From NCBI GenBank assembly GCA_964035545.1, contig OZ037769.1, positions 4,693,929-4,757,928 of the forward strand: a stretch of 64,000 bases of DNA, written 5' to 3'. The notes below the pieces were generated by a model. It saw only the letters and a list, made by a program, of their open reading frames with translations. It did no database searches and was not told the origin of the DNA. Shown piece by piece: positions 32,792-60,902 of this stretch; position 1 is the first letter of the stretch, and each line of letters begins with the position of its first letter. The translations under genes were made by a program, and so were the position numbers. The stretch is from Bugula neritina. Its lineage: Eukaryota; Animalia; Bryozoa.

Positions 32792-35394
32792 CTACATTAT
32801 TTGGAAGTTGAAGGAAGATAGCAGAGCATCAGCCAGTTGCTGCTTGTAATCAGGTGACTCATAGTGTAATGTTTTCATGATCTACAGCACAGTTTCCAAA
32901 ATGTCTCATAATCAATAGATAATCATATAATATTAATCGAACAGTTATAGTATTATAGGATTGTATAACATTACCTACTAAATGTAGATCAGTGGTTAAT
33001 ATTTTTTGAGTTGTGCTCACTTGAACGCTATAAGCTTCACCAATATGCTATTTAACTTACAAGTGTCATCTACTAAATTCTGCCAATCGAAGTGAAACAA
33101 GCAGAACATGTGAGCTAGCCAATTTTGTTAGCTAGAAGGATCTAATTAAATAAATGTGCATGCACCTTCGCCTTGAAAAATATGTAATATCTTGAAAAAG
33201 TTAAAAATTATAGCGTAGCAATCACCCAGCAATGATATCACGAGTTAAATCTAGAAAAACTGTTTGCCTACCTTTAAAGCTGCTCTGAGATCTTTCCTAC
33301 GATTCAACACCTCAGGTTCAATGGTATCCAAAAGTATGATGATGGTTGGCTTGCATAGAGCCAGTGATAAACTCAAAGAAGTGTCAGACCAGTCAGCTTT
33401 TGTCTCATCTTGAGTAAACATATCATTTGACAGAAAGATGATTATTTTCTCTGATGATTTGAGACATTCAGACATGATGAGAGGCGTCACTAAAAGACAT
33501 AAAACACTTCACTCAACATTTGAATAGCAGCTTCTACATGCTCAGTTAACTTTGTAAGGCAGGTGGATAAAAATCTAAATACACTTTTATGGTACTATTG
33601 AAAAAACAGGTTTGCCAAAATTGTTTGCTGCAAGTTGCATTCACCTAAACTAATTTTGAGGACATGTGAAATAAATGAGAAAAATGGATGTGTGTGGGTC
33701 TGCTAATGAATTATACCACTAGAACTTAAATGTTAAACCCTGGCCATTTTTCTAATATACAACTACAATATGGTAAGTTTCTCCATTAGGTTTAGAAAAA
33801 TGCATTCTAATGTTAGCAAAAATGTCAACTCTAGACCAAGAAGTGATCGTGAATGAAAATATTGCAAGCATTAAAAGAGACTTTAGGTTGCAAGGAGACA
33901 AAAACCTTATGTTGATACGTTTGTGCTCCCACCTACATAGATGACAAGTGGATAGATATGTACAGCTGGCTATAAAAAGAGTAATGTAGAAGGTGGTATG
34001 TAGTTATTGTAAGCTCATTTTTATAGTTTCCTTACATTAGCATGACTAAAACATTGTAGTGGAAATCAGTGACACAGATACATAACTGAATATACTGAAC
34101 TATGTTAGACTACTAAGCATTAAACGCACTTCATGTATTACAGTGGCTAATAGATTTCAAACTTTACTGCAAAACGTGTTACTCTGTGCACAACATACAT
34201 GTGGCCTGCTTAAACATCTCAAGATCTAATACATACATACCTGAGCCGATAGCAAAGTCTCGGCCTGGTACACACAGTTTGAGGCAGAACCGGTTTTCTA
34301 TGGTGTTGATAAAAGTGGTAACCGCAGGGTGGTCGATATCTGAGTAGACCATATAGGCAGCATACTTGTAGTTTCCTAAATAAATGGAGTTTTCGAAGAC
34401 CGATGAGATTATATAAATAGAAGCACAAACAGACCACAACAATCTTATTGAGTAACTCGTCTTCAGGAAATCAAATACTAATAAATCAAAATATTATGTC
34501 TCAACTAAATCTAAGCCAACTGTGGTTCAATGCTATTGGCCAACTTGTAGTATGTGATAGAAAGCAGGTAATAAAAAGGCTTTTTGATATGTAAATAAAA
34601 TTTAATGTCATGACTTGTAATTTTTAATAGACTAAATATTTGTACATAAACTTCATCTCGGAGCTAGAGAGAAAAATGATAAATGTAATATTTATTCGCT
34701 ATTGATTAACCAATCATGTACTTTGCTAATTTTGATGGAGCAGAACCTTGGCAAATACAAGTATTAATAATAACTATATGTGTAGTAATTTATTGCCTCA
34801 AACTTTCATGGGCAAGTCGCCAGCAAAACACATACTATCAAGTTTTTTAGCCAATACTTTTAACTTTTTGTTGCTTTTTTCCCCAGAAATGCTTTTTGTT
34901 AAAAACATCTTAATTAAAAATATATAAGTCAATAAATCAACTAGATCAATTGACAATGTCATATTCAATGAGATTTTTAGAGAGCTGCATAAAATTACCT
35001 TAAAGTTTAACGATATGTATGTTAGTATGTGGTACAAACCTTTAGTATAAAGAGCTGATTTTAGCCTCTGTACCACATTAACAGGATACCACATATTGTA
35101 GTATGTATTGTATCTTACGGTGAGGGTGAAGACCAGCACCACAATGATTACTAGCAGAGCTAGGGGCACTGCTATAGCAACCGAGAGGTTTGATTTCTTT
35201 GGAACTTCATGGACTATAGAGTTTGTCTCGGCAACTAAAATATAACATCTATAAAATATAATCATGTGTGCTGCTGAAAACAACGAATATCTGCCCGATA
35301 CCCTGTATATACCTAAGAGAATGTGTGTTTAGTGTGCATGTGGTGTGATTGAGTGTATGTGTGTAATTGTGCATGAATGTGAGAGAAAAGAGAG

Positions 35395-35491
<97 letters not shown>

Positions 35492-38400
35492 GTGTGCGCA
35501 TGAACACATTAACTTGATTTCTGTACTCAATGCAAAACAAAATTAGTTCGCTTGCAGATCAGTAAAATACTATAGCACAGCAACAAAGTAGGCCAAGCCA
35601 ACACAGCTAAAAGATTTTCACAAAACTGATGCAGTTTTATGTTATGCTATGCCTAGAGCAAGGTTATAAACTCAATTCATAACTAAATCCTTATACTATC
35701 ATCAGTTTGAAAAGTGACCGAGCTTTACGTGTCAAAAAAGTAGGCTTATCTTAAAATTGGGTCACATAATCTAAACTATTGCTTTTTTTTCAATACAAGC
35801 TTTAACTTGGAAAAATGTGTAACGAAACTGATAGCAAATACCTTTTCATTCATAATGACTTATCAACAATCTTAAACATAATATATTTACTATTTCTATG
35901 ATGCCTGCTGTCATGACCAACAGAAGCAGTTAGTAGAATTTAGTAAAACTACGTCTATTGAGGAAACAACAAAGTGCAAAACTATTATTAGAAAAGCTGT
36001 AAGTCAATGTTTATATGACTCATGACATGTTCCAAAATGGCGGTTCAAATATGGAAGATTGTTTGCTATTCTGAGTATTATAGCAACTCTGATAATGCCA
36101 GTGGCAATGATCCTAGACCTATACCTTTGGCACATGGTCCACCAGAAACATACATAGCACCACTAACTACTTGGGAGTGGCTGGCTGCTTGACAGTAGTA
36201 TTTCTTGTTCAGCCATTCTTTGTCAACTTTAGGTATCACAACTTGGAAATGACTCTCATTTTCTAGACTGTAAAACAAGCGATATGTTGTGCTAAAACAT
36301 TGAGACTAACTTGTCCTGATAGGTGGATTGGTCACAGTCATTTGGCGAATGATGAGTTAAACTGCCTTTACTGGCTTTTGCTTTTGATAAATTGCTTTAC
36401 AAACATGGTGATGATGTGAGTGAGAGGCCATAATAAATATCTGCTTGCATCATCACTAAAATAAATCACACAATATTTTTGTTTATCCTTGAATATTCAG
36501 TAGAGTGCTAGTGCATAACATTTATAGATAGTGAAAACTTACAGAAGTACAAACTTTCTTTGCATTGCATTTTGGGACTATGACTACCCAACGTTTCGGA
36601 ATCATATCTTTAATTGCCACAGTCATTAAAACTTTCACTTACCAACTTTGCCTTTATAAAGCTGAATTTTATGTATGCTATGTGCAATTACAACAGGGTT
36701 ATGAGTACACAAAGCTACTATAGTGCTACTAACTTAACTTTCTTTCTTAGAAATATTTGCTGTCGGTCCAGACTCATTCGAAAACATTTTCAATCAGTTG
36801 CCGTCCATGGTTAAATAACGAATTAATGCTTTGACTCAAACCATGCTGTCAAAAAGGTTGGCAACACTTTAGAGAAACTCAAAAAAGATTCTGACTGCAT
36901 CAAAACAGCTCCCTCTAACCATAAGTACAGAACATCCAAGTTCCCACAATTTTTCTATAGCTGATGAGATTAGTACTGTGCAATATATAGTTACTTACAG
37001 TCATTGCAGGTGGTATTGTGATTTTATAGAATAGGACACAGGTATGCCAATCTACCTATATAAGACCTGCATCAACCTAGGTATTATTTGGTAGGCTAAT
37101 TAAGCAGTTAAAATTGTCTTACACTGTGAGATTATAAGGGATCTTGTTGAAATCCAAGGCTAGAAAAGTTAAGTTTTCATTAAGCAAGACAATTCGACGG
37201 GTCTTCAACAAATTATCCACAGGATAAGATAAGGAACAGGAAATGGTTATGTTTTCGCCTTCTTCCACGCAAGTCTCTTCCACTTGAAACTTTGTAAAGA
37301 CTGGAAGATCCTGAGACTGTGTAGGCAGCTCTACATACCAGCAACATAAACTCATTAGTGGCTGATATATTATTTGTTCTTTATAGCAAATTGTAAGGCA
37401 GATAATATTCTGACTGTAATCATAACTCCATGTGTACATCTTTTATATGACTAAATAGTACCAAAAAACACGAAAGAAATTTAAAGGGTGCTAGAAGATG
37501 CTGTAGATTGTCAAATGGAAACATAAATGGAGCTAACGAAAACTAAATAGAGCTAACTAACACAAACTGAACTGAAACGTAACTGAAAGACAAAAGAGAT
37601 CTTGAAATAGAACTAACAAACCAACAAAACAGTGCATTAAACTCATGGGGCACAACTGTAACCTTTTACTTTTTATATAGCTATATTTGTAAACTTTATC
37701 AGCTAAAGAGTTTTAGTGATTTTGAATGGGAAGATACAAATAATTTTTAGTATCTCATGACTAATTTGTTAGCAAGGGTTATCCATCAGCTTTTCTAGAA
37801 CTTACGTAACGCTTGGATAGTGATGTTGTTAGAGATAATTGTTTGACCATTAGCTGATATGGCTTCACATGTAAATACAATCTTGTAAATAGCACTGGTG
37901 GAGAATGTAACAGGAAGCGAAGGCTGAAGGGAATACCACATCAACTGCTGTCTGGTATCTTCGTCAGCATAACAGTGAGTCCATGAATTGAAGGGAGATA
38001 ACTTTACTCCATCTTTATACCTAGGCTACAATGCACTGACATTTTGGAGATATTTAAATTTGTACTTTGAATGAAAAAATTTTAAAACATCCAAAAGCTA
38101 ATACATGTGAGGATTTATACTCTAGGTAGGCAACTAATTTTACATTTAGTCTGTAAAGTACTTTGTAAAAACTACAATTGAATTGATGCCTGCATCAATT
38201 TAACATAAAAAGGTAGACAACAAAAACATTTATTTCATGATATACAAGAGAATTAAAATATTATACAACAAACAAATTCTGTGTTGACAAATGTCACTTT
38301 TTTCATCATTGTTATTTTCTAATAAGATTGCAACTTATCATAACGGTATAAAAACATTATATATGCTACCATCGGTAAATGTTAAGTTTCAAAATAGCGC

Positions 38401-39072
38401 AAGACATGCTAAATGACAAAACACTTGAATCTCAAAGAGATAACTTGCAGGATAACTTAATACGGCAAAAGCTGATAAAATAATTGAGTTTAACAAAGCT
38501 TGTTTTAAAAGACTAAACATCTGTGTAATTTTGAAATTCAAATTAGCAAAAACATTAAGATAAGAAAACTGAATAGTACAAAACCTAAGGTGTAACCAGC
38601 TTTGTTGATGATAGAGCAGCTATTCCATGTGTAATGTATTTATGAAGTGCCAGCTTACCAGTTGACAACAGAGAAGCCTGTAGCGCAGCACTCTAAAAAT
38701 ATCATTCGATCTAGATAGTGAAATCTGTGAGTTTGAGGGTAGACGGATCCACTCAGTTGATCATGAGGGTTTACAAAATCCAGAGCTAAAAATAAAAGTT
38801 TGCACTGTAAGCAAGCTTTGGCAATACTACACTTGTAAAGAGTTTTCCCTGACTTGGCCTTTGAATGCGTGTGACCTATATAGCAATAAAATAATCAATT
38901 TTAAAACCAACTCAAAACTTAATAAAGTTTACATACCAGCAGATTTGTTGTTTGGTTTACACATCTTTGCAGTTGGATCAATCTTGGCTCTCTGTTCTAC
39001 TTCTAAACACAGAGAATCAGACAGATGTATAAATCTTCCCAGAATAAGACAAGCTACCAGTACTAAAGCCAT
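32792..39072 (-). CDS. IL-1-receptor-like Ig-Ig-TM-TIR protein, copy 1 (~488 aa)
   Basis: Exons 38937-39072 (signal peptide), 38659-38785 and 37806-38020 (Ig1: LECCATGFSVVNW|YKDG..FTCEA), 37123-37330 and 36125-36267 (Ig2: EGENITISC..FQVVIPKVDKEWLNKKYYCQA), 35040-35234 (TM VAIAVPLALLVIIVVLVFTLTV), 34241-34375 (TIR box1 YKYAAYMVYS, box2 LKLCVPGRDFAIGS), 33272-33489 (SEKIIIFLSND..PTIIILLD) and 32792-32881 (stop). All phases match; 1467 nt. Confidence 0.9.
35381..35489. repeat. (GA)n microsatellite in intron 5 of receptor copy 1
   Basis: Long GA run; the equivalent is long in copy 3 and short (GA/GT compound, ~47155-47214) in copy 2. Confidence 0.95.
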
Positions 39073-39763
39073 CTTCGCATTCACACGTAAAGCTGTATAA
39101 AAGCACTGACCATTGATACCAGACAATACTGCAAGTAACGATTATGGAGGAGAAATGAAGTAAAACTGCACCAGTTTTGTTGACAAACTAGTTTAATAAA
39201 TCATCCACATGCTATTTATATCACACTGCGGTGAGTAGTGTGAAGTGTCGTCACAGCATGGTAGAAAGTTGAACTACGTGTTGCGAAATCATAATTTAAA
39301 GGTGCTTCCAACGAGAATTATATATAGTTGCATACTTTTTACAGCTAGTTTGAATGGCTGTAACTGTAACTGCACTTAGTTTCGCATGCTTTTAGATTTT
39401 TTATACAAGTAAAACATTTCACGTAATGTAAGCATAGGGAAATTTGTTGCGAGAACGACCTGCCACACACAGTGCGTCGGCTGTGGGTGTACGGAATTTT
39501 ATTAGCTAATGATGTAATCGTGTTTAACTTTACTGCTCGCCTACAGACATATGTTTTAATCTAGTCATCGGCTCTACAGCGGAAATGCAAACTATTGAAA
39601 AATGTTTTAATTAGGTTTGGTAGAAGTTTAACTGCGTATGAAAACACAAAAAGTTTGCTTGTTAATGGCAAGCAGCCAATTAGATCAAATCCGTACAAGC
39701 TTCCCGCACTTGCTGCTCCGCATGTTATCCGCATAAAAATTGTAGGGTTGAGTTAACCCAGCA

Positions 39764-39826
39764 GCCTCTGTGGTGTAATTGGTGCTTGCAAGCCGGAGGT
39801 CTGTGGCTGGAATCTCGATGGGAGCA
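39764..39826 (+). repeat. Degenerate tandem copy of the tRNA-derived element
   Basis: GCCTCTGTGGTGTAATTGG..TGCTTGCAAGCCGGAGGTCTGTGG with an internal deletion; it has the same 5' flank (gttgagttaaccc) as the copy at 39980. Confidence 0.65.
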
Positions 39827-39979
39827 TTATTTTACAAGCTATTTCGGTCTGTAGTAAAGTGTAGTAGAAGTACTCCGAGAGAGTTGAGAGGCCAGAGGAG
39901 CCTGAAGACTGAAGGAGTAGTAGAGAGGTCAGTAGAGTTCAGAAAACTGGGTGGGATGTAGTGTTGAGTTAACCCCACA

Positions 39980-40052
39980 GCCCCCATGGTGTAATTGGTT
40001 AGCGCACCTGCTTGCAAGTCAGAGGTCTGTGGTTCGAATCCTGGTGGGGGCA
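39980..40052 (+). repeat. tRNA-derived (SINE-head-like) element / tRNA pseudogene
   Basis: 7-bp acceptor stem GCCCCCA/TGGGGGC, A box TGGTGTAATTGG, B box GGTTCGAATCC and loop CTTGCAA; the anticodon and T stems pair poorly. Confidence 0.75.
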
Positions 40053-40602
40053 ATTATTTTGCAAAAACCACACACAACAGCACACTTTTGAGCTGGACGG
40101 ATTTTTCGCATTTGGTCCCTGCAGGGAAATCTTTGTCGTGTAGCCCTACGCTTAGTGATCCAAAGCAGGATAATCCAACGTGCACATTACTTGTTTAGCT
40201 TGTGAGCTTTATGAGCTACAATCTAAATAATTATGCTGAATTTAATTTTGTAAATAATTTTACAATCATAGTTATTCTAAGTACCTTGATTTATCAGAAA
40301 AGTTGAAAAATATTTGCAGTAGCATACATCATGAGCTTTTCAAGAAGTCTCAACTTGGAGTAATGCATAAATTATAAGTAATACACTTAGCAGTTGGCAA
40401 CTTTTAGTTGATTAGTAAAATTTTGCTCTTTGAAAACCTGTGATGCTTCTTTAAAATATACTTAAAATACTGCATTAAACTACATTTTGGATAAAAAAAA
40501 CTGTTTTATAGCATATAAAACAATGTAAAATATTGGATTAGGTTTAGTAGAAACAACATAGTGTAGAAATAGTCACATACAAAGATTATATATATAACTC
40601 AC

Positions 40603-42774
40603 TTACTATAAGCAGTCAGTTGAGGACGACTATGACTGACGATGGATCAACCTTCTCCACAGTGTTCTGTTTTGTGCCAGGTTGTACCATTTGTTGACGT
40701 CGATATCCTTCTTTTTGAGGTGTTCCTTGATGGTGACTTTGTATCCTAATCTAGAACGTCCTTGTTTTCTATGGCCAGATACCAGCTTAGAAAATAACTT
40801 CTTCTTGGGTAATCGATGGGCATCTCGTCCATTCACGGTTGCAAATTATTACCTGATCATACATTGGTGCTAACTTTGCTCATTGAAGAATTTCAGTGTT
40901 GGAGATTTTTATGCTACCGTTTAACTTTCATGATGAACTTAAACTGTTTTATCACAAAGGTGTTGAGTTTCTTAACCTAAGATTTGTACAGCGTCCAAGT
41001 CTTAGAGCCGTATAGTAGTGTGATCAGAACAATAGCTCTGTACACTTGACATTTCACTCTGGTTGTTACGTCATTGTTGTTCCAGAGTTTCTCTCTCAGT
41101 CTCCCAAATGCAACTGAAGCTTTACACATCCTTGTTTGCGGTTCAGTGTCTAGACTTCCATCATGAGTAATTGTGCTGCCAAAGTATGTAAACCTGCTTA
41201 CATTTTCCAGCAGGCGATCCTCAATCTGGAAATTGCCAGATCTTTTAGTGGTATGTGCACATGGTTGGTACATGACCGATCTGCTTTGCGCATATTTATA
41301 CACAATCTGAAGTCATGGGCAGCTTTAGCAAAACGTGATGTAACCACCTGCTTATTCTCCAAGCTGTGTGCTATTAGTGCTGTGTCATCCGGGAACAGCA
41401 ATTCACGATGCGCAACCACTTGAGTACAATTCTTGTATTTGAAAAGAGCGAGGTTGAATAGATTAGCACCAGGTCTGGTCTGCAGGTAGATACCCTGGGT
41501 GGTGTCAGGGAATGCTTCGTCGAGTACCGCTGCGAGGTATGTGCTAAGCAATTTAGGCCCAAGAACACAGCCTTGTTTTACTCCATCATTGACAGCAAAT
41601 GGTGGTGACAGCTGGTCTTTGCTTGCGATATGTGCTTCCATCCCAACATGGAACTGCTGGATCAGCTTAATCAAGTGTGATGGGACACTGTTTTTTCCAA
41701 GGATGATCCACAGCGCCTCTCTGCTAACTGTCAAAGGCTTTGGTGAAGTCTATAAACACAGCATATAAAGGTCTCTGCTGCTCTCTACATTTTTCTTGCA
41801 CTTGCTTCAAGATGAAAATCATTTCCACAGTACTTCCCTCAGCTCAGAAACCAGATTGGGTTTCTGGCAGAATAGTAGCTTCAATGTGATGATTTATTTG
41901 GTTGAGCTGAGTTCTTGCCATGACTTCACCGGGAATTAATAGCAAGGAGATACCTCGATAGTTACCAAAGTCACGTCGGTCGCCTTTATTAAACATAGTT
42001 ATCATGGCAGTGTCCCTCCAGTCTTTAGGAATTGTACCACTTCTCTAAGCTCTACATATAATTTTCCACAATGCTTCTTTCAGAGATGTGCCACCTTGCT
42101 TTAATGTTTCACCAGGAATTTGCTCGTTACCGGGTGCTTTGTTGTTAGCCAGTCGTTAATTGCGTTGTTCAGTTCTAGAAAGTCAGGCTCTGTCTCCAAT
42201 TCATGAGCAATTGGTATGTTTTTGATCCTGGTGGTGATTTCCGCTGACACAGTACAAGTCTCATTGAGAAGATCATTGAAATGTTTTGCCCATTTGCATA
42301 GGATATCCCTTTCATCTCTCTGAATGTTTCCATCTTCAGCCTTAATGTGGATTTTGTGTCTGGTGGTGACGTCCCCAAACTTCTTTCAGGCTGTTATAGA
42401 AAGCCCTGGTGTTGTTTGTGTCGGCAAGTAGTTGCAGCTGTTTCGCTTTGGATTTTCAACTGGTGATTTTCAGTTTTCTGGTTTTTAGTTAGAGTTGACA
42501 ATAAGCTTCCCGGTGTACAGCTTTATTAGCACGTGTTGCCCTATTAGAGAGTAGCTTATCCCTAGTCTAGTTTTTATCTGACAGAAGCTGCTGAATTTCA
42601 AGATCGTTTTCATTGAACCAGTCTTGATACTTCAGTTTGTTTGTTCCAAGTGTAGCCAAGGACACTCTTATTAATATGGTGCGGAGTGTGCACCAGGTGG
42701 TCTCAACATTACTATCTATGAGCACTTCTTTCTCCGTAGGTTCTTTGGCTATTGTATTATCAAGTTCTGATCTG
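40603..42774 (-). mobile_element. 5'-truncated, degenerate non-LTR retrotransposon (RTE-like LINE) with reverse-transcriptase remnants
   Basis: Frame-broken RT motifs: KGDRRDFGNYRGISLL, QEKCREQQRPLYAVFIDFTKAFDS, GVKQGCVLGP, LLFPDD, LLYGSKTW, and a C-terminal WYNLAQNRTLWRRLIH typical of RTE-clade ORFs. Flanked by the direct repeat TATAACTCAC at 40593-40602 and 42775-42784. Confidence 0.9.
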
Positions 42775-43467
42775 TATAACTCACATGTAGTTAATCCTGT
42801 GCTTCCCATTTGCTGATACTTGCTCAGAAATTTATTTCATATTTTTATGAATTGTATTACGAGGAACTCTGCACCCCATAATTCATTACACAAAAATTTT
42901 CTCATAGAATAATTTACATAAAAAACATCTAATAATTGAATTGAACAGCAGTTTTTAAAAAGCATATGTATAACTGATAGAAATCTACAAAATTTATGTT
43001 ATAACATAAAGTACATAATATTACCTCACTTTCAAATAACTATAGTTATCACTAGTGCGTTGTGTAAAATATGTTATGTGGTGCTTTGGCAAGCTGTGCT
43101 ACATCATGTTACATAATACTTTACATAATTTCATGCAATAAATTGATGGTTTCTTTCAATTCTGAATATATAATGAGTATTTAACCTTCTGTTCTTCCGC
43201 CTACATACATATTGTTGTAAAGGTGTGGGTTGCCTATCGAGGACAGTGCTGATTGAACATAAACTCTTTGTGAAAGTCTGAGTCTGTTGTAGATGTCAAA
43301 TGGTTTATTATTCATAAGCATGCTGCTAAAATGGGCTCATGCATAGACCTATACAAGTAAAGAGAATATTAATTGGGAAAATAGTTCTAAGTAGTCTGTA
43401 GTGATCCTTAGCCAAGACTGATTAACAATAGAAAAACACCTGCCTTTTATACTAAAATGTTTATTGT

Positions 43468-43910: not shown

Positions 43911-44558
43911 CGGATATATACAAACATTGCAATTAGACAGAAAGACAATAATATTTTTGCTCGTAATTTCTATTACCATTTATTAGATAGTTAAAATAAC
44001 TACAAATTGTATTTAACGTAAAGAAAAAAGAGTTTTATTAATATTGTCTTAACATAGTTTGTTCCAGTAAACTTCATCCCAAGCTTAGTTTAAATTAGCT
44101 TTTGTCCGTGAATTAATATTGGCTATAGATTAAATAGTATACCATATCATTATATATTTATTATTCTATAATTATCACGCAAAGGTTTGCATAAAATAGA
44201 GTACACTATAAAGATTATGCAGCTGCTCATAAAGGTTAATGGATATTTTATGTACAAATAATAAAAAAGTCACCAAAATTAGAAAAATATATGCCTGTGT
44301 ATAATAATATATTATGCATGAGCTATAATGTCAGCTGTGACACTAAAATTGAAGTACTTAGTACAACATTCTATATTGGATGGTAATTATGTTGAGTATA
44401 ATGCATAATAATAATATATATTTATATATTAACAATGTGCGTCTCAGCATATACAGTAAATTTCATAAGAAGTTATATTACATGATAATAATATACTACA
44501 GTTATAATTATAAGCCAAACGTTAAATCCATTATAATAGCTTGCTATTCTATTCTCAT

Positions 44559-47500: not shown

Positions 47501-50500
47501 CCTATCTTGAAATTGGGTCACATAATCTAAACTATTGTTTTTTTTCAATTTAAGCTTTAACTTTGAAAAATGTGTGAATGAATAACGAAACTGATAGCAA
47601 ATACTTTTTAATTTATAATTACTTATCAACAATTTTAAACATTATATATTTACTATTTCTATGATGCCTGCTGTCATGACCAATAGAAGCAGTTAGTAGA
47701 ATTTGGTAAAACTACGTCTATTGAGGAAACAACAAAGTGCAAAACTATTATTAGAAAAGCTATAAGTCAATGTTTATATGACTCATGACATGTTCCAAAA
47801 TGGCGGTTCAAATATGGAAGATTGTTTGCTATTCTGAGTATTATAGCAACTCTGATAATGCCAGTGGCAATGATCCTAGACCTATACCTTTGGCACATGG
47901 TCCACCAGACACGTACATAGCACCACTAACTACTTGGGGGTGGCTGGCTGCTTGACAGTAGTATTTCTTGTTCAGCCATCCTTTGTCAACTTTAGGTATC
48001 ACAACTTGGAAATGACTCTCATTTTCTAGACTGTAAAACAAGTGATATGTTGTGCTAAAACATTGAGACTAACTTGTCCTGATAGGTGGATTGGTCACAG
48101 TCATTTGGCGAATGATGAGTTAAACTGCCATTACTGGCTTTTGCTTTTGATAAATTGCTTTACAAACATGGTGATGATGTGAGTTAGAGGCCATAATAAA
48201 TATCTGCTTGTCACTACTAAAATAAATTACACAATATTTTTGTTTAACCTTGAATATTCAGTAGAGTGCTAGTGCACAACATTTATAGATTGTGAAGACT
48301 TACAGAAGTACAAACTTTCTTTGCATTGCATTTTGGGACTATGACTAACCAACGTTTCGGAATCATATCTTTAATTGCCACAGTCATTAAAACTTTCACT
48401 TACCAACCAACATTGCCTTTATAAAGCTGAGTTTTATGTATGCTATGTGCAATTACAACAGGGTTATGAGTACACAAAGCTACTATAGTGCTACTAACTT
48501 AGCTTTCTTTCTTACAAATATTTGCTGTCGGTCCAGACTCATTCGAAAACATTTTCAATCAGTTGCCGTCCATGGTTAAATAATGAATTAATGCTTTGAC
48601 TCAAACCATGCTGTCAAAAAGGTTGGCAACACTTTAGAGAAACTCAAAAGAGATTCTGACTGCATCAAAACAGCTCCCTCTAACCATAAGTACAGAACAT
48701 CCAAGTTCCCACAATTTTTCTATAGCTGATGAGATTAGTACTGTGCAATATATAGTTACTTACAATCATTGCAGGTGGTATTGTGATTTTATAGAATATG
48801 GCACAGGTATGCCAATCTACCTATAGACCTGCATCAACCTAGGTATTATTTGGTAGGTTTAATAAATATAGTTAAAATTGTCTTACACTGTGAGATTATA
48901 AGGGATCTTGTTGAAATCCAAGGCTAGAAAAGTTAAGTTTTCATTAAGCAAGACCATTCTCCGGGTCTTCAACAAATCATTCACAGGATAAGATAGAGAA
49001 CAGGAAATGGTTATGTTTTCGCCTTCTTCCACGCAAGTCTCTTCCACTTGAAACTTTGTAAAGACTGGAAGATCCTGAGACAGTGTAGGCAGCTCTACAT
49101 ACCAGCAACATAAACTCATTAGTGGCTGATATATTATTTGTTCTTTATAGCAAATTGTAAGGCAGATAATATTCTGACTGTAATCATAACTCTGTGTACA
49201 TCTTTTATATGACTAAATAGCACCAAAAAACACGAAAGAAATTTAAAGGGTGCTAGAAGATGCTGTAGATTGTCAAATGGAAATATAAATGGAGTTAACG
49301 AAAACTAAGTAGAGCTAACTGACACAAACTGAACTTAAATGTAACTGAAAGACAAAAGAGATCTTGAAATAGAACTAACAAACCAACAAAACAGTGCATT
49401 AAACTCATGGGGGGCAACTGTAACCTTTTACTTTTTATATAGCTATATTTGTAAACTTGATCAGCTAAAGAGTTTTAGTGATTTTGAATGGTAAGATACA
49501 AATAACTTCTAGTATCTTATGACTAATTTGTTAGCAAGGGTTATCCATCAGCTTTTCTAGAACTTACGTAACGTTTGGATAGTGAGGTTTTTAGAGATAA
49601 TTGTTTGACCATCAGCTGATATGGCTTCACATGTAAATACAATCTTGTAAATAGCACTGGTGGAGAATGTTACAGGAAGCGAAGGCTGAAGGGAATACCA
49701 CATCAACTGCTGTCTGGTATCTTCGTCAGCATAACAGTGAGTCCATGAATTGAAGGGAGATAACTTTACTCCATCTTTATACCTAGGCAACAATGCACTG
49801 ACATTTTGGAGATATTTAAATTTGTACTTTAAATGAAGAAATTTTAAAACATCCAAAAGCTAATACATGTGAGGATTTATACTCTAGGTAGGCAACTAAT
49901 TTTATATTTAGTCTGTAAAATACTTTGTAAAAACTACAATTGAATTTATGTCTGCATCAATTTAACATAAAAAGGTAGACAACAAAAACATTTATTTCAT
50001 GATATACAAGAGAATTAAAATATACAATAAACAAATTCTGTGTTGACAAATGTCACTTTTTTCATCATTGTTATTTTCTAATAATATTGTAATTTATCTT
50101 AACAGTATAAAAACATTATATATGCTACCATCCCTAAATGTTAAGTTTCAAAATAGCGCAAGAAATGTTAAAGACAAAACACTTGAATCTCAAAGAGATA
50201 ACTTGCAGGATAACTTAATACGGCAAAAGCTGATAAAATAATTGAGTTTTCCAAGCTTGTTTTAAAAGACAAAACATCTGTGTAATTTTGAAATTCAAAG
50301 TAGCAAAAACATTAAGATAAGAAAACTGAATAGTACAAAACCTAAGGTGTAACCAGCTTTGCTGATGATAGAGCAGCTGTTCCATGTGTAATGTATTTAT
50401 GAAGTGCCAGCTTACCAGTTGACAACAGAGAAGCCTGTAGCGCAGCACTCTAAAGCTATCATTTGATCCAGATTGCTGAATCTGTGAGTTGGGGGGTAAA

Positions 50501-50831
50501 TGGATCCACTCAGCCGATCATTTGGGTTCACAAAATCCAGAGCTAAAAATAAAAGTTTGCACTGTAAGCAAGCTTTGGCAATACTACACTTGTAAAGAGT
50601 TTTCCCTGACTTGGCCTTTGAATGCGTGTAACCTACATATAGCAATAAAATAATCAATTTTAGAAACAACTCAAAACCTAATAAAGTTCACATACCAGCT
50701 GATCTGTTGTTGGGTTTACATTCCTTTGCAGTTGGATCAATCTTGGCCCTCTGTTCTACTTCTAAACACAGAGAATCAGACAAATGTATAGATCCTCCCA
50801 GAATAAGACAAGCTATTAGTACTAAAGCCAT
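44559..50831 (-). CDS. IL-1-receptor-like Ig-Ig-TM-TIR protein, copy 2 (~488 aa)
   Basis: Exons 50696-50831, 50416-50542, 49568-49782, 48887-49094, 47888-48030, 46814-47008, 46013-46147, 45037-45254 and 44559-44648. Lengths and phases match copy 1 and no in-frame stops were seen. Confidence 0.9.
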
Positions 50832-51551
50832 CTTCGCATTCACACTTAAAGCTGTATAAAAACACTGACCATTGATACCAGACAATACTGCAAGTAATGA
50901 TTATGGAGGAGAAATGAAGTAAAACTGCACCAGTTTTGTTGACAAACTAGTTTAATAAATCATCCACATGCTATTTATATCACACTGCGGTGAGTAATGT
51001 GAAGTGTCGTCACAGCATGGTAGAAAGTTGAACTACGTGTTGCGAAATCATGATTTAAAGGTGCTTCCAACGAGAATTATATATAGTTGCATACTCCTTA
51101 CAGCTAGTTTGAAAGGCCGTAACTGGAGCGCTTAGTTGCACATGCTTTTAGATTTTTTATACAAGTAAAACATTTCACGTAATGTAAGGATAGGGCCACG
51201 TGCGTGAGAATCTGTTGCGAGAACGACCTGCCACACACAGTGCGTTGGCTGTGGGTGCGGAAGTTCATTAGCTAATGATAATCATGTTTAACTTTATTGC
51301 TCACCTACAGACATTTGTTTACACAAATGACAAATAAATTATTTAATCTACGTCATCGGCTCTGAGGCGGAAATGCAAACTATTGAAAAATGTTTTAATT
51401 AGGTTTGGTAGAAGTTTAACTGCGTATGAAAACACAAAAAGTTTGCTTGCTAATGGCAAGCAGCCAATTAGATCAAATCCGTACAAGCTTCCCACACTTG
51501 CTGCTCCGCATGTTATATTCATGAAAATTGTAGGGTTGAGTTAACCCAGCA

Positions 51552-51614
51552 GCCTCTGTGGTGTAATTGGTGCTTGCAAGCCGGAGGTCTGTGGTTCGAA
51601 TCTCGATGGGAGTA
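51552..51614 (+). repeat. Degenerate tRNA-derived element, duplicate of 39764-39826
   Basis: Same internal deletion; B box GGTTCGAATCT retained. Confidence 0.65.
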
Positions 51615-51731
51615 ATTATTTTACAAGCTATTTTGGTCTTTATTGAAGTGTAGTAGCAGTACTCCGAGAGAGTTGAGAGGCCAGTGGAGTTCAGAGAACT
51701 GGGTGAGATGTAGTGTTGAGTTAACCCCACA

Positions 51732-51804
51732 GCCCCCATGGTGTAATTGGGTAGCGCAACTGCTTGCAAGTCAAAGGTCTGTGGTTCGAATTCTGGTGGG
51801 GGCA
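51732..51804 (+). repeat. tRNA-derived element, duplicate of 39980-40052
   Basis: GCCCCCATGGTGTAATTGGGTAGCGC..GGTTCGAATTCTGGTGGGGGCA. Confidence 0.75.
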
Positions 51805-51933
51805 ATTATTTTACAAAAATGTGCACACACCAGCACATTTTTGGACAGGACAGATTTTTCGCATTTGGTCCCTGCAGGGAAATCTGCATCGTGTAGCCCT
51901 ACGCTTAGTGATCCAAAGCAGGGTAATTCAACG

Positions 51934-52641
51934 AATCCGCGACATTTAACAAATGACAATTCAAAAACACCTATTTCGAAAAAGACAATTCCCAAATTGA
52001 CAATTCCCAAATTGACAATTAATAAATTGACTTTTAGAAAAAAAGACATTTCTAAAAATGACATTTCACAAATGATACGGCCCAGTCGGGTGTGAGCTCT
52101 ACCGGGTCGAGAATAAGTTAATATAAACGTGGGCAATTGCAGATTAGGACTGTTTGGTAGCTAACACTACTTCCGTGATAGCCTAACTCATACGGCGTTT
52201 ATATTTGTTGCTGAAAGCTTTAAATCTTGTCAAGTTCAAGTTGAAATAATTACTACTTATTTACTTTTACTTTTATACTTGTATTATTGCGTGATGTTAC
52301 TATGTACACTATATGTTATTTAATTTTATTAATTGTATTTCATTTTCTTCTTACTTTTCAGTTTTAACTTATGAAATACGGTTAATAAAATTAAATAACA
52401 TATAGTGTACATAGTAACATCACGCAATAATACAAGTATAAAAGTAAAAGTAAATAAGTAGTAATTATTTCAACTTGAACTTGACAAGATATAAACCCGG
52501 TATGAGTTAGGCTATCACGGAAGTAGTGTTAGCTACCAAACAGTCCTAATCTGCAATTGCCCACGTTTATATGAACTTATTCTTGACCCGGTCGAGCTCA
52601 CACCCGACTGGGCCGTATCATTTGTAAAATTTCGTGTCACC
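51934..52641. mobile_element. Foldback/MULE-like non-autonomous insertion: ~15-bp tandem repeats plus a ~570-bp near-perfect palindrome
   Basis: Inverted arms ~52063-52343 and 52371-52630. GACAATTCCCAAATT-type repeats at ~51940-52065. Imperfect 9-bp flanking duplication AATTCAACG (51925-51933) / AATTCGACG (52642-52650). The equivalent site upstream of copy 1 has a single AATCCAACG (40172-40180). Confidence 0.8.
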
Positions 52642-53064: not shown

Positions 53065-53330
53065 TCACTAAGCAGTCAGTTGAGGACGACTATGACTGAC
53101 GATGGATCAACCTTCTCCACAGAGTTCTGTTTTGTGCCAGGTTGTACCAATTGTTGAGGTTCTCTTTTGATGGTGTCTTTGTATCTTAATCTAGGACACC
53201 CTCGTTTTCTATGGCCAGATACCAGCTGAGAAAATAGCATCTGCTTGGGTAGTCGATGGGCATCCACATGTACAATGTGACCCGCCTATTCAAGGTTGTG
53301 AATTATTACTTGATCATATATTGGTGCTAA
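53065..53330 (-). mobile_element. 3' remnant of the same RTE-like LINE at the equivalent site upstream of receptor copy 2
   Basis: Closely matches ~40605-40873 (RLPKQMLFSQLVSGHRKRGCPRLRYKDTIK) with the same left junction (tatataactcac); the rest of the element is missing. Confidence 0.85.
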
Positions 53331-54172
53331 TTAATATAAAAGAATGTATTGTAATTGAAAGCAAACCCACACTTAATAACAGAAAAATACCAGTCACCGG
53401 AATCCCCATCTACTGCGGGTCAGCTTGCACCATGTGCTTTAATCTGCTGAGTTGCTGACGGAGTCCTTAACGATGCCCTCCATACACTTGCCCAGGTTGC
53501 AATGTCTTCAATTTTCTTACACATATATACAAATATTGCAACTGGACAAAAATACAATAATATTTTTGTTCGCAATCTCTATTACCATTTATTAGATGGT
53601 TAAAATAACTACAAATTGTATTTAACGTAGAGAAAAAAGAATTTTATTAATATTGTCTTAATATAGTTTGTTCCAGTAAACTTCATCCCAAGTTTAGTTT
53701 AAATTAGCTTTTGTCGGTGAATTAATATTGGCTATAGATTAAATAGTATACCATATCATTATATATTTATTATTCTATAATTATCACGCAAAAGTTTGTA
53801 CAAAATAGAATACAATATAAAGATTATGCATCTGCTCATAAAAGTTAATTGATATTTAATGTACAAATATAATAAAAAAGTCACCAAAATTAGAAAAATA
53901 TATGCCTGTGTATAATAATATATTATGCATGAGATATAATATCAACTGTGACACTAAAATTGAAGTACTTAGTACAACATGTTATATTAGATGGTAATTA
54001 TGTTGAGTATAATGCATAATAATAATATATATTTATATATTAACAATGTGTGTCTCAGTATAATAGACAGTAAATTTTTTAAGAAGTTATATTACATGAT
54101 AATAATATACTACCATTATAAGCATAAGCCAAAAGTTAAATCCATTATAATAGCTTGCTATTCTATTCTCAT

Positions 54173-56757
54173 CTACATTATCTGGAAGTTGAAGGAAGAT
54201 AGTAGAGCATCAGCCAGTTGCTGCTTGTAATCAGGTGACTCATAGTGTAGTGTTTTCATGATCTACAGCACAGTTTCCAAAATGTCTCACAATCAATAGA
54301 TAATCATATAATATTAATGGAACAATTAGCATTATAGGATTGTATAACATTACCTACAAAATGTAGATCAGTGGTTAATATTTTTGAGTTGTGCTCCCTT
54401 GAACACTATAAGCTCTACCAATATGTTATTTAACTTACAAGTGTCATCTACTAAATTTTGCCAATGAAATGAAACAAGCAGAATATGTGAGCTAGCACAA
54501 GTTTGTTAGCTAGAATGATCTAATTAAATAAAATATAAGCATGCACCTTTGCGTTGAAAAACATCTAATATCTTGAAAAAGTTAAAAATCATAGCGTAGC
54601 AATAACACAGCAATGATATCACGAGTTAAATCTAAAAGAACTGTTTGCCTACTTTTAAAGCTGCTCTGAGATCTTTCCTACGATTCAACACCTCAGGTTC
54701 AATGGTATCCAGAAGTATAATGATGGTTGGCTTGCATAGAGCCAGTGATAAACTCAAAGAGGTGTCAGACCAGTCAGTCTTTGTCTCATCTTGAGTAAAC
54801 ATATCATTTGACAGAAAGATGATTATTTTCTCTGACGATTTGAGACATTCAGACATGATGAGAGGCGTCACTAAAAGAAATGAAACACTACACTCAACAT
54901 TTGAATAGCAGCTTTTACATGCTCAGTTAACTTTGTAAGGCAGGCGGATGAAAATTTAGTACACTTTTATGGCTATTGAAAAAACAGGTTTGTCAAAATT
55001 GTTTGCTGAAAATTACATTCACCTAAATTGAATTTGGGGAAAGAGAAAATAAATGAGAAAAATGGATGAGTGCGGGTCTGCTAATAAATTATACCACTAG
55101 AACTAAATTCTAAACCCTGCCTCTTTTCTGATATACGACTACAATGGTTAGTTGTTCTATTAGGTTTAGAAAATGCCTTCTAATGTATACAAAAATGTCA
55201 ACTCTAGACCAAGAATTGACCGTGGATAAAAACACAGTAAGCATTAAAAGAGACTTTAGGCTAGAAATAAAAAAAAACTTTATGTTGATACGTTTGTGCT
55301 CCCATCTATACATGACAAGTGGATAGATATGTACAGCTGGCTATATAGAAAGAGAGAGGTAGAATTGACGATATATGCTATGTAGTTATTGTAAGCTCAA
55401 TCTTATAGCTTCCTTACATTAGCATGACTAAAACACTGTAGTGAAAACCAGTGACATAGATACATAGCTACATAATATACTGAACTATGTTAGACTACTA
55501 AGCATAAACAGCTCGCATTAAACCCAGTTCATATATTACAGTGGCTAATAGATTTCAAATTTTACTGCAAAACGTGTAACTCTGTGCACAGTGTACATGT
55601 GGCTTGCTTAAACATCTCAAGATCTACGTAATACATACGTACCTGAGCCTATAGCAAAGTCTCGATCAGGTACACACAGTTTGAGGCAGAACCGGTTTTC
55701 TATGGTGTTGATAAAAGTGGTAACGGCAGGGTGATCGATATCTGAGTAGACCACATAGGCAGCATATTTGTAGTCACCTAAATAAATGGAGCTTTCCAAA
55801 ATGAGATTATATAAATAGAAGCACAAACAGACCACAACAATTTTATTGAGTAACTCGTCTTCAGGAAATCAAATACTAATAAATCAAAATATTATATCTC
55901 AACAAAATCTAAGCCAACTGTGGCTCAATACTATTGGCCAACTTGTAGTATGTGATAGAAAGCAGGTAATAATAATGTCATGACATGTAAATTTTTAAAA
56001 GAAGAAATATCTTTATATATAAACTTCATCTAAGATCTGGAAAGAAAAATGATAATTATGATAGTTGTTTGCAATTGATTAACCAATCATTTACTTTGCT
56101 AATTTTGATGGAGCAGAACCTTGGCAAATACATGTATTAATCATAACTATATATGTAGTAATTTTTGCCTCAAACTTTCATGAGCAAGTCGCCAGCAAAA
56201 CACATACGATCAACTTTTTAAGCCAATACTTTTAATTTTTTGTTGTTTTTTTTCCCAGAAATGCTTTCTGTTAAAAACATGTTAATTAAAAATATATAAG
56301 TCAATAAATCAACTAGATCAATTGACAATATCATAATCAATGAAATGTTTAGACAACATAAAATTTCCTTAAAGTTTAACGATATGTATGTTAGTATGTG
56401 GTACAAACCTTTATTATAAAGAGCTGATTTTAGCCTCTGTACCACATTAACACGATACCACATATTGTAATATGTATTGTATCGTACGGTGAGGGTGAAG
56501 ACCAGCACCACAATGATTACTAGCAGAGCTAGGGGCACTGCTATAGCAACCGAGAGGTTTGATTCCTTTAGAACTTCATAGACTATGGAGTTTGTCTCGG
56601 CAACTAAAATGTAACATCTATAAAATATAATCATGTGTGCTGCTGAAAACAACAAATATCTGTCTGACACCCTGTATATACCTAAGAAGATGTGTGTTTA
56701 GTGTGCATGTGGTGTGATTGAGTGTATGTGTGTAATTGTGTAATTGTGCATGAATGT

Positions 56758-56848
<91 letters not shown>

Positions 56849-59800
56849 TGTGTGCGTGCGTGTGTGTACATTTCATCTTTAAATGACTTTAATTAAAAAA
56901 CTACACCGCATGAACACAGTAACTTGATTTCTGTTATACTCAATGCAAAACAAAATTAGTTCACTTGCAGATCAGTAAAATACTATAGCACAGTGACAAA
57001 GTAGGCTAAGCCAACACAGCTAAAAAATAATCGCAAAACTGAATCAGTTTTATGTTATGCTATACCTAGAGCAGGGTAAGCTCATTTCATAACTAAATCA
57101 TTATAATATCATCAGTTCGAAAAGTGACAGGTCTTTGCTTATCAAAACAAGTAAGCCTATCTTGAAATTGGGTCACATAATTTAAAAAAATTTTTTTTTA
57201 ATTCAACTTGGAAAAATGTGTGAATGTGTGAAGAAACTGATAGCAAATACTTTTCATTTATAATTACTTATCAGCAATTTTAAACATAATGTATTTATTA
57301 TTGCTATGATTCTTTCTGTCATAACCAATAAAAGTAGTTAGTAGAATTTGGTAAAACCAGGTCTATTGAGGAAACAACAAAGTGCAAAACTATTGTTAGA
57401 AAAGCTATAAGTCAATGTTTATATGACTCATGACATGTTCCAAAATGGTGGTTCAAATATGGAAGATTGTTTGCTATTCTGAGTATTAGCAACTCTGATA
57501 ATGCCAGTGGCAATGATCCTAGACATATGATGATGCTGATCAGCAAACAGACGTTTTACCTTTGGCACATGGTCCACCAGAAACATACATAGCACCACTA
57601 ACTACTTGGGGGTGGCTGGCTGCTTGACAGTAGTATTTCTTGTTCAGCCAGTCTTTGTCAACTTTAGGTATCACAGCTTGTAAATGGCTCTCATTTTTTA
57701 GACTGTAAAACAAGAAATATGTTATGCCTGTCCTGATAGGTGGATTGATCACAGTCGTTTGGCGAATGACAAGTTAAACTGCCATTTACTTGCTTTTGCT
57801 TTTGATAAATTGCTTTACAAGCAAGGTGATGTAAATGAGAGGCCATAATATATATTTGCTTGTCACTGCTAAAATAAATCACACAATTTTGCTGCTTATC
57901 TTTGAACAATCAGTAAAGTGATAGTACACAACATTTACAGATTGAAAAACCTGCAGAAATACACAAAACCGACTTTATAAGCTAAGTATCATACGCACTA
58001 TATATGTGCAATTACAACCGGGCTATGAGTATACAAACCTGCCATAGTACTATACTGACCCAAACTTTCATGGCTCAGTCATAAACTTTTTCAAACTTTT
58101 CAGTTACCCTTCAAGGCCAAATCATAATAAGGCTATAGTAAATATTAAATTCCTTGCCACAAACCATATTACTAAAATGGCTGGCAAAGTTCTAAAGAAA
58201 CAGAGGAAGTTGTGCTTACATGTCATACCGCCATCAAAAAGGTTCTCTCTAATCCTAAGTGCAGAACATTGAAGTTAATGCCACAATTTTTCTATAGCTG
58301 ATGAGATTAGTACTGTGCAATATATAGTTACTTACAATCATTGCAGATGGTATTGTGATTTTATAGAATAGGACACAGGTATGCCAATCTACCTATAGAC
58401 ATGCGTCCACTAAGGAAATATGTGGTAGGCTTATAAGATAGTCAAAATTGTCTTACACTGTGAAATTGTAAGGGATCTTGTTGGAATCCAAGGCTAGAAA
58501 AGTTAAGTTTTCATTGAGCAAGACAATTCTCCTGCTGGTCTGCATTAAATTATCCACAGGATAAGATAGGGAACAGGAAATGGTTATGTTTTCACCTTCT
58601 TCCACGCAAGTCTCTTCCAATTGAAACTTGGTAAAGACTGGAAGATCCTGAGACTGTGTAGGCAGCTCTACATACCAACAACATATAAATTTATTAGTGC
58701 AGAGCAAATTGTAAAACATATATTAATATTCTGACTGTAATCATAACTTTGTGTATATCTTTAAATGGCTTCATCTGATATGCACTAAAAGGCACTAGAA
58801 GCACCAAATAGCACCAAAAGACACTAAAGAAGCCTAAAGAGTGCTAAAATATGCTGTAGACCGCCAACTTGAAACATACACGGAACTAAAGAAAACTAAA
58901 CAGAGCTAACTGACACGAACTGAACTTAAATGAAGCTGAAAGACATGAAAGATCTTGAAATAGAACTAACAAACTAAATGATGCTAAAGAGCATTGTAGC
59001 GTAGCAAATGAATCTGGGATTTGCATGAGTTGAGCCTATTGAATTTACATAATACTTTACAGCTGTAAGACTGGCTATGAGCAATACTTATAGTTGAATG
59101 TCTCTCTTTTTATGTCATACCAATAATGACAATACTTAAATATTTACCATAAATCTATATTTGGTTCAAAAATTTGTATAATCAGTGCAACTGTAAGCTA
59201 TACTTACACAACAATTGCTTAGATTATTTGTTTTTAAATGTCCAAAATATGCCATTAAAACAACAGATTGTCTACAAATATGTTACGTAAGAGCATGAAT
59301 CAGTTTTGACTAGTAAATAGCCTGTTTTGGTACCTTCCTTATCAGATAAATCTCAATCAATTGATTCACTGCATTTAAAATGTGCACTAAAATCACGACT
59401 TCTGTATAGCTCAAAACAATGCTTTAAACATTTAACTGTAACTGTAACCTTTTACTTTTTATATAGCTATATTTGTAAACCTTATCAGCTAAAGAGTTTT
59501 AGCGATTTTGAATGGTAAGATACAAATAATTTTTAGTATCTTATGGCTTATTTGTTAGCAAGGGTTATCCATCAGTTTTATCTAGAACTTACGTAACGCT
59601 TGAATAGTGAGGTTGTTAGAGATGCTTGTTTGACCATTAGCTGATATGGCTTCACATGTAAATACAATCTTGTAAATAGAACTGGTGGAGAAGGTTGCAG
59701 GAAATGAAGGCTGGAGGGAATACCAGATCAACTGCTGTCTGGTATCCTCGTCAGCGTAACAGTGAGTCCAGGAATTGAAGGGAGATAACTTTACTCCATC

Positions 59801-60902
59801 TTTATACCTAGGCAACAATGTACCGACAGTTTGCAAATATTTAAATCTGTACTTCAAATAAAAGTTTTAAAAATTCGAAAGATTAACACATGTGACAATT
59901 TATACTTTATGCAACTAATTATACATTTAGTCTGTAAGGTACCTACTTTGTAAAACTAGAGAGGTAAATGATACCTAAATCTATTTCGCATTAAAATATG
60001 CGCATCAAAAATATTTGTGAATTCATGATATACCTACAAGAGAAATAAATTATACATTACACTAGTTATAATTTATGAACACATGACACTTTCTTCATAT
60101 TGTTATTTTCTAGTAATTAATATTGCAATTTATTTTAACAGTATAGAAACATTCAATGGGCTACTCCCCGTAGGTTTTAAGCTTTATAATAGATCAAGTG
60201 CTAAAAGACAAACATATACTGTATTATTGAATCTCAAAGTGATAATTTGCAAGATATAGCTTAGTAGTGCAAAAGCCGGTAAGAAGAATAAATTGAACAA
60301 GCTTTGCTTTAAAAAACAAAACATGTGTAATCTTGAATCTAAAAATAGTAACTTGCATGACAAAAAGCATTGAGATAAGTACTTTGAATAGTACAAAGCC
60401 TAAAATTTAACTAGCTCTGTTGATGGTAGAGCTGCTATTTTGTTTGCAATGCACTTAACAAAAGTGCCAGCTTACCAGTTGACAACAGAGAAGCCTGTAG
60501 CGCAGCACTCTAAAGACATCATTCGATCTAGATAGTGAAATATGAGAGTTTGAGGGTAAACGGGTTCACTCAGTCGATCATGTGGGTTTACAAAATCCAG
60601 AGCTAAAAATAAAGGTTTACACTGCAAGTAAGCTTTAGCAAGACAAGGCTATAGGTACTCGCACAGCGCTTTCCCTGATGAAGCTTTTTAATGCATTTAC
60701 CTTACGTAATGATGATAAATTCAGTTTTAAAAAACCGCACTTCAAGACCTAATAAAGTTCACATACCAGCTGATCTGTTGTTGGGTTTACATTCCTTTGC
60801 AGTTGGATCAATCTTGGCTCTCTGTTCTACTTCTAAACACAGAGAATCAGACAGATGTATAAATCCTCCCAGAATAAGACAAGCTACCAGTACCGAAGCC
60901 AT
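54173..60902 (-). CDS. IL-1-receptor-like Ig-Ig-TM-TIR protein, copy 3 (~489 aa)
   Basis: Exons 60767-60902, 60476-60602, 59593-59807, 58457-58667 (one extra codon), 57560-57702, 56409-56603, 55643-55777, 54653-54870 and 54173-54262. Frame and GT-AG boundaries are intact. Confidence 0.9.
56758..56845. repeat. (GA)n microsatellite in intron 5 of receptor copy 3
   Basis: Long GA run at the equivalent position. Confidence 0.95.
58973..59412. repeat. ~440-bp segment in intron 3 of receptor copy 3, absent from that intron in copies 1 and 2
   Basis: Copies 1 and 2 read gaactaacaaaccaacaaaacagtgc straight across this site; an inverted homolog lies at 43468-43910. Confidence 0.75.

Follow-up and report, generated by a model that had tools for sequence, protein, structure and literature searches.

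The stretch of Bugula neritina DNA analyzed here, 64,000 nucleotides of contig OZ037769.1 (assembly GCA_964035545.1, positions 4,693,929 to 4,757,928; hereafter, the window), contains a tandem array of three minus-strand genes, denoted c1, c2 and c3, that encode interleukin-1 receptor (IL-1R)-like proteins, and a divergent fourth gene of the same architecture, c4, is located past the right edge of the window. This cluster is real and well-formed and represents a known type of invertebrate receptor; no description of it in bryozoans was found in the literature, although homologues are named in RefSeq. The additions of the present analysis are the fourth gene, a difference in copy number between two assemblies of the species and an exchange of exon 2 between the copies. 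The predicted layout of c1-c3 is that of type I membrane proteins with two immunoglobulin (Ig) domains and a strongly conserved TIR domain. The favored function, to which we assign about an even chance, is that of cytokine-type receptors of the invertebrate IL-1R-like kind that signal via a MyD88-like adaptor.

Gene models and domain architecture

The predicted models of c1, c2 and c3 (Table 1) each consist of nine exons separated by GT-AG introns with the phases 1,2,1,2,1,1,1,0; the frames are open, without internal stops and with a single terminal stop, and the GenBank annotation breaks these young copies into fragments. Hydropathy peaks are confined to exon 1 (signal-like) and exon 6 (Kyte-Doolittle value of 3.1-3.2) in all three genes, the latter being the one internal hydrophobic peak, as in invertebrate IL-1Rs with their single transmembrane helix. 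The three open nine-exon genes encoding a signal peptide, two Ig domains, a membrane helix and a TIR domain that an earlier note on this DNA had described hold as models; the fourth gene was overlooked there. The window contains three copies of a repeat unit of ~8 kb, each bearing one minus-strand gene (identities between the units in Table 1). The recent tandem expansion proposed in the same note is supported.

Two junctions deserve comment. For exon 2, a length of 127 nt was chosen because a longer form (217 nt), open in c1 and c2, has stops in c3; homologues give no support to the long form, and the short junction agrees with the GenBank model KAF6016700.1 and with the intron position in Watersipora. 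The least secure model is c3, with the exon-5 junction as its weakest point, because the acceptor used in c1 and c2 is lost there (a deletion of ~18 nt) and the substitute AG, 6 nt upstream and preserving the frame, has a weaker pyrimidine tract.

The fourth gene spans positions 70355-63792 in extended window coordinates (start at about 4,764,283 of C5, the contig that holds the window; C1-C9 denote contigs of the same genome) and encodes 487 amino acids in nine exons, with intron phases identical to those of c1-c3 and per-exon identity to c1 of 14-37%. Exon 8 of c4 matches the TIR_2 profile at E = 2e-4; a tree of single-exon TIR sequences left this gene unplaced.

Profile searches were run exon by exon, and proteins of the bryozoan Watersipora stood proxy for the joined window proteins in the Pfam TIR and fold tests. 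Exon 3 matches a GenBank fragment from B. neritina, KAF6016700.1 (87% over the matched stretch), and full-length RefSeq proteins of Watersipora subatra. Exons 2-8 are colinear with the Watersipora proteins at 30-57% identity, with E-values of 1e-13 and 1e-23 for the TIR exons 7 and 8, and eight intron positions are common to the window genes and the Watersipora genes; exon 9 has no detectable match. The TIR assignment is made by homology because the TIR exons of the window do not score singly in Pfam: taken one at a time, the c1 exons yield no TIR above noise in Pfam or PDB searches. The Watersipora homologues score 26.7 and 23.6 bits in Pfam, above the TIR cut-off of 21.3 bits, and the TIR profile of the family matches PDB chains of TLR5, TLR3, IL-1RAcPb, MyD88 and IL-18RAP, down to E = 1e-8, with scores tied among MyD88, IL-1RAcPb and the TLRs. 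The profile half of the check that the earlier note had called for is thus passed by the homologues but not by the single exons of the window, and the fold half gave a proxy model in which the TIR part is of low confidence, so that it does not confirm the TIR fold.

The Ig part of the proxy model fares better, matching tandem Ig structures with E of 1e-8 to 1e-11 and Z of 10-11, at a predicted local distance difference test (pLDDT) score of 60-85; a single-sequence fold of the proxy ectodomain reached a pLDDT of 41. The Cys/Trp core motifs of Ig folds occur in exons 2-3 and 4-5, giving the two Ig domains typical of invertebrate IL-1Rs. Via the Watersipora homologues, these Ig and TIR identities are predicted for the window genes, and the IL-1R-like architecture originally claimed is borne out by the homology, the tandem-Ig fold and the Pfam TIR scores. 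The Atlas clusters nearest to the Watersipora homologue are IL-1RAcP-like, IL1RAPL2-like and SIGIRR-like proteins of chordates and arthropods (0.94-0.95). Word-indexed homologue searches returned solely bryozoan or unnamed proteins, which reflects a limit of sensitivity rather than a bryozoan-only family because the Atlas shows arthropod look-alikes.

The Cys-Cys pair to which the earlier note had drawn attention in Ig1 is confirmed: in the whole genome, the motif Cys-Cys-x-x-Gly followed by its intron has exactly four occurrences, one in each of c1-c4. Besides the pair, an N-terminal Cys and the Cys of the F strand are conserved throughout these genes and their Watersipora counterparts. These residues likely form two disulfides, one in the core and one linking the N-terminus to the second Cys of the pair. 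The similar motifs that the earlier note mentions in automatically annotated protostome IL-1R-like proteins are shown for the bryozoan relatives and no wider.

Signaling motifs, candidate ligand and mode of action

As judged from the predicted proteins, the window genes fall within the working definition of invertebrate IL-1R-like receptors and lack the defining features of the jawed-vertebrate IL-1R family. They contain two Ig domains instead of one or three, and only 5 of the 9 residues of the extended Box 2 motif of TIR group 4, E-x3-G-Y-x-L-x-I-x-x-R-D-x-x-P-G, are present in exon 7, with G, Y, I and P differing (the definitions of TIR groups 3 and 4, Box 2, Box 3 and the number of Ig domains follow PMC7075850). 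No leucine-rich repeat (LRR), the hallmark of TLRs, is detected by Pfam in any window exon. The glutamate of helix alpha-C that is required for NADase activity is replaced by Ser, four residues past the alpha-C aromatic, in c1-c4 and in Watersipora (alignment by eye). In the window TIR, the BB-loop Pro is changed to Ile, and exon 9 of c1-c3 contains no Trp, so that the FW pair of Box 3, with its beta-E Trp, is missing. The domain therefore looks like a non-enzymatic scaffold of non-standard type.

If the window genes are cytokine-type receptors, the ligand of the two Ig domains would be a protein made by the host, a beta-trefoil cytokine of the IL-1anc type being the most likely one, and it would be bound by a surface like site A (D1 + D2) of vertebrate IL-1RI, where domains 1 and 2 form the cytokine site and a second chain is then recruited (PMC6596353). 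Ligand binding would pair the receptor with a partner chain, for which c4 is the obvious candidate, or with a sister copy; the paired TIR domains would recruit a Death-TIR (MyD88-like) adaptor, leading to an output of the NF-kB/AP-1 type. On this view, c1-c3 would differ slightly in the ligand surface and hardly at all in the signaling end, which would make them near-redundant variants. The statement in the earlier note that invertebrates lack clear IL-1 orthologs is outdated because candidate ligands, the IL-1anc proteins (PDZ + beta-trefoil), were published in 2025-26, including those of bivalves and crustaceans (PMC12338702, PMC13736523), and in cnidarians and ambulacrarians, linkage with IL-1anc genes has been described for the putative IL-1Rs of invertebrates, which have two Ig domains (PMC13736523).

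Several points weigh against a cytokine receptor of this kind. No invertebrate receptor has been proven to bind IL-1anc, and the work on these putative ligands makes no mention of bryozoans (PMC13736523); furthermore, an independent origin of Ig-TIR proteins in several lineages has been argued (PMC2858798, PMC7075850). A genome search with PF00340 gave no match and is uninformative, and the single PDZ match on C5 is 3 Mb away, although an exon-wise search may miss split PDZ domains. The ancestral IL-1/IL-1R locus includes a neighboring IL-1anc, GCC2 or ESD gene (PMC13736523); none of these was seen by eye in 40 kb to the left and 60 kb to the right, GCC2 not having been searched by profile, and the best eukaryotic esterase (ESD-like) match is on C7, not near the cluster. 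Finally, the missing BB-loop proline and Box 3 FW pair make canonical MyD88 recruitment uncertain.

Two other regions of the genome are of note in this connection. C1 contains two inverted copies (3,015,900-3,020,000, minus strand, and 3,049,000-3,055,400, plus strand) of an arrangement in which a death-domain exon precedes two sets of TIR_2 matches; at 3.02 Mb, the death-domain exon is ~1.2 kb upstream of the TIR_2 exons on the same strand. Judged from these profile matches, the putative genes resemble MyD88, possibly with a second TIR. The region C5:3,200,000-3,215,000 contains an inverted duplicate of a small gene and a third relative, FGF-like by eye and without a Pfam match. This beta-trefoil gene pair, 1.47 Mb from the cluster, was considered as the ligand and rejected, there being no PDZ match either.

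With the NADase glutamate, the Box 3 FW pair and the BB-loop proline all absent from the TIR domain, inhibition must be taken seriously as an alternative function. The receptors could be regulatory or non-immune, either dampening chains like SIGIRR/IL-1R8 or adhesion-type proteins like IL1RAPL1 that bind another surface protein, a possibility that we consider unlikely although by no means negligible. The vertebrate members with fewer Ig domains are inhibitory, and IL1RAPL1 chains are among the structural neighbors of the proxy model, where they are tied with many Ig proteins. However, the TLR3 motif also lacks that BB-loop proline in the PDB profile alignment, and TLR3 nevertheless signals; one Watersipora paralogue retains the PG pair of the BB loop; and the TIR is the most constrained part of the window proteins.

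Selection, exchange between copies and the second assembly

A second B. neritina assembly (VXIV02003486.1) shows the same gene order, namely, a TIR gene of 485 amino acids, two young copies and an EF-hand gene. The array is therefore real, although it comprises three young copies in this genome and two in the other. With differences of 2-8% in the c4 exons and 11% around the EF-hand gene, VXIV02003486.1 represents a distinct lineage; its 1-bp frameshifts, mostly in homopolymers, are probably read errors. In introns 1, 2 and 4, c1 and c2 group with the proximal copy of that assembly and c3 with its distal copy, and in introns 6-8, c1, c2 and c3 cluster together against it, which indicates homogenization of the TIR end within this genome. 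The family history suggested by these sequences starts with an old gene, c4, and a second gene that was duplicated in tandem; the distal/proximal duplication appears to be older than the split from the VXIV02003486.1 lineage and the c1/c2 duplication younger.

The genes c1-c3 are under purifying selection: the ratio of nonsynonymous to synonymous substitution rates (dN/dS) among the young copies is 0.29-0.34 overall, with values of about 0.4 for the ectodomain and 0.06-0.12 for the TIR. The counts of nonsynonymous and synonymous changes (N/S) differ between ectodomain and TIR (p=0.003). Exon 2, which in the proxy model corresponds to the first Ig1 strands and ends at the strand bearing the Cys-Cys pair, has a distinct history. 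Among the informative sites of c1, 13 side with c3 and 5 with c2 in exon 2, vs 13 with c3 and 165 with c2 in the flanking introns (Fisher p about 1e-9). These counts are most simply explained by a gene conversion confined to the exon, by which a distal-type (c3) exon 2 was moved into the proximal-type gene c1. The diversity of exon 2 largely stems from sequence exchange between the copies. This is the most variable exon at the protein level (13/41 positions vs 32/239 in the other ectodomain exons, p=0.006), but positive selection, which was considered, is not shown because N/S in exon 2 does not exceed that of the remaining ectodomain exons (p=0.45), and the pairwise dN/dS is 0.4-1.1. In Watersipora, the equivalent segment is 22% variable vs 12%, which is not significant (p=0.11). 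The diversifying family envisaged in the earlier note is, in this sense, partly supported: the ectodomain evolves faster than the TIR, but there are only four genes, and what varies in exon 2 is mostly exchanged.

The variability of exon 2, the different numbers of young copies in the two assemblies and the separate tandem triplet of Watersipora could also reflect direct binding of microbes by pattern-recognition receptors, pathogen pressure having diversified exon 2. This version of the pathogen-sensing role put forward in the earlier note seems improbable given the N/S and dN/dS values of exon 2, the lack of significance in Watersipora, the presence of only four genes and the existence of separate LRR-type TLRs in the genome; moreover, a cytokine receptor chased by pathogen decoys would yield the same pattern.

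Allorecognition, the other role put forward there, finds no support, and a locus controlling colony fusion is highly unlikely. The animal is colonial, the ectodomains are of the Ig type, and two old exon-2 lineages persist across copies and assemblies, with flanking introns alike. However, these are differences between paralogues, not shown between alleles, and the ectodomains of the copies are 86-91% identical. For polymorphism of the kind seen in Hydractinia Alr ectodomains, one DNA run and one other assembly were considered, and all 40 variants against c1 that are listed for the run (there are 161 others) carry c2 or c3 letters. Allodeterminants are not known to use TIR tails.

It is very improbable that c1 and c2 are two alleles assembled in tandem or that the copies are decaying duplicates: c1 and c2 are both of the proximal type, of which VXIV02003486.1 has one copy, and c3 has lost a splice acceptor, but all frames are open with dN/dS about 0.3, and short-read contigs from the DNA run, which may be the source sample, carry c1-, c2- and c3-specific sequence at depths of about 106 (c1 only), about 115 (c3) and 151-183 (c2), not the half depth expected of alleles, contig depth being a poor measure of copy number. 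These contigs speak, albeit indirectly, against the haplotype duplicates considered in the earlier note.

Relation to known receptors and neighboring genes

The nearest relatives of the window genes are the W. subatra proteins XP_067933549.1 and XP_067936316/358/359 (annotated as "IL-1 receptor accessory protein-like" or uncharacterized) and an "IL-18 receptor 1-like" protein. Colinear exons 2-8, the eight intron positions, the N-terminal Cys, the Cys-Cys motif, the TIR core and a tandem triplet are shared, but the duplications are separate, with about seven Watersipora genes on three chromosomes (the triplet and further copies on two others); the names are automatic only, and no functional study was found. 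The annotation of the third triplet gene, XP_067936359.1, stops just past the membrane helix and includes no TIR, which might represent a decoy or an incomplete model. The putative IL-1Rs of cnidarians, ambulacrarians and arthropods (PMC13736523, PMC5094078) resemble the window proteins in having two Ig domains, one membrane helix, a TIR domain and several copies per genome; the likeness is one of architecture, and the window locus differs in showing none of the neighbors named above.

With the jawed-vertebrate IL-1R family (IL-1R1, IL-1RAcP, SIGIRR, IL1RAPL; group 4), the window genes share the Ig-TM-TIR layout, a tandem cluster and the Box 2 spacing from the alpha-A Glu to RD, and differ in the number of Ig domains, the Box 2 residues and the absence of the Box 3 FW pair. 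Two TIR introns, one preceding Box 1 and one following Box 2, are presumably in the same register as in human IL1RAP; the post-Box 2 intron may be common to adaptors as well. As in the TLRs (group 3), the Box 2 region of the window genes contains the group 3 Cys and RDF..G (5 of 7 motif residues), but they have no LRRs, and the TLRs of this genome are separate genes with another exon layout. Canonical TLR genes, with an LRR exon of 775-792 amino acids followed by TIR exons, are located at C3:6,767,406-6,770,260, C2:16,735,200-16,738,030 and C2:16,432,430-16,435,840 (Pfam on the first two); no TLR was found in a B. neritina transcriptome (PMC8609888). Further TIR_2 matches, split near profile position 36-38 in a manner resembling the exon 7/8 border, occur on C2 (2.13 and 2.83 Mb), C9 (6.41 Mb), C3 (18.80 Mb), C1 (8.58 Mb) and C4 (3.48 Mb) and could belong to other Ig-TIR or adaptor genes.

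Within the window, a broken non-LTR (long terminal repeat) retrotransposon with a reverse transcriptase fragment (40600-42850, minus strand) lies between c1 and c2, and a long nested inverted repeat resembling a miniature inverted-repeat transposable element (52060-52633, arms of 145 nt and 125 nt, 95-98%) lies between c2 and c3. The EF-hand gene, which resembles myosin regulatory light chain (about 25800-29950, minus strand), is the downstream neighbor in both Bugula assemblies. One or more multi-exon genes occupy positions 1-23300 (minus strand); the domains encoded there are of the EGF and F5/8 type C (discoidin) types, and a hydrophobic segment lies near 21050-21320.

Table 1. Coordinates of the array and its parts (window positions)
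Feature	Position	Strand	Basis or remark
c1, IL-1R-like gene, 496 amino acids	32792..39072	minus	spliced model and homology to Watersipora
c1 exons	39072-38937, 38785-38659, 38020-37806, 37330-37123, 36291-36125, 35234-35040, 34375-34241, 33489-33272, 32881-32792	minus	
c1 exon 2, probable gene-conversion tract	38659..38785	minus	c3-type sequence within c2-type introns; first Ig1 strands through Cys-Cys motif
c1 exon 6, stalk, predicted transmembrane helix, juxtamembrane segment	35040..35234	minus	hydropathy and Watersipora alignment
c1 exons 7-9, predicted TIR	32792..34375	minus	exon 7 with Boxes 1 and 2, exon 8 with the core, exon 9 with a degenerate Box 3 region
c2, IL-1R-like gene, 496 amino acids	44559..50831	minus	spliced model
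c2 exons	50831-50696, 50542-50416, 49782-49568, 49094-48887, 48054-47888, 47008-46814, 46147-46013, 45254-45037, 44648-44559	minus	
c2 exon 2	50416..50542	minus	other exon-2 lineage, nearest to proximal copy of VXIV02003486.1
c3, IL-1R-like gene, 499 amino acids	54173..60902	minus	spliced model
c3 exons	60902-60767, 60602-60476, 59807-59593, 58667-58457, 57732-57560 (alternative acceptor), 56603-56409, 55777-55643, 54870-54653, 54262-54173	minus	
c4 last exon (exon 9)	63792..63941	minus	sole c4 exon within the window
Duplication unit 1	32176..40180		91% identity to unit 2 (43938-51933), 81-85% to unit 3
Duplication unit 3	about 53520-61260		81-88% identity to units 1 and 2

The locus touches on the questions of whether invertebrate two-Ig TIR receptors bind IL-1anc and whether their likeness to the IL-1Rs of vertebrates stems from homology or convergence. 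A more elaborate scheme, which we regard as distinctly improbable, is that c1-c3 as ligand-binding chains and c4 as the accessory chain make up a complete receptor/co-receptor set for a bryozoan IL-1anc, with exon-limited conversion shuffling the ligand-contact strands and selection keeping the two old exon-2 types. If true, a cytokine receptor of an invertebrate would be diversifying in a manner resembling that of the major histocompatibility complex, and the TIR intron positions held in common would favor genuine homology to the IL-1Rs of vertebrates. Although usable as a test set, the array does not constitute a new kind of system, and a first model is better chosen among species in which an IL-1anc is known; what this locus offers is a bryozoan example with clean gene models, an adjacent candidate co-receptor and natural ectodomain variants on a constant TIR.

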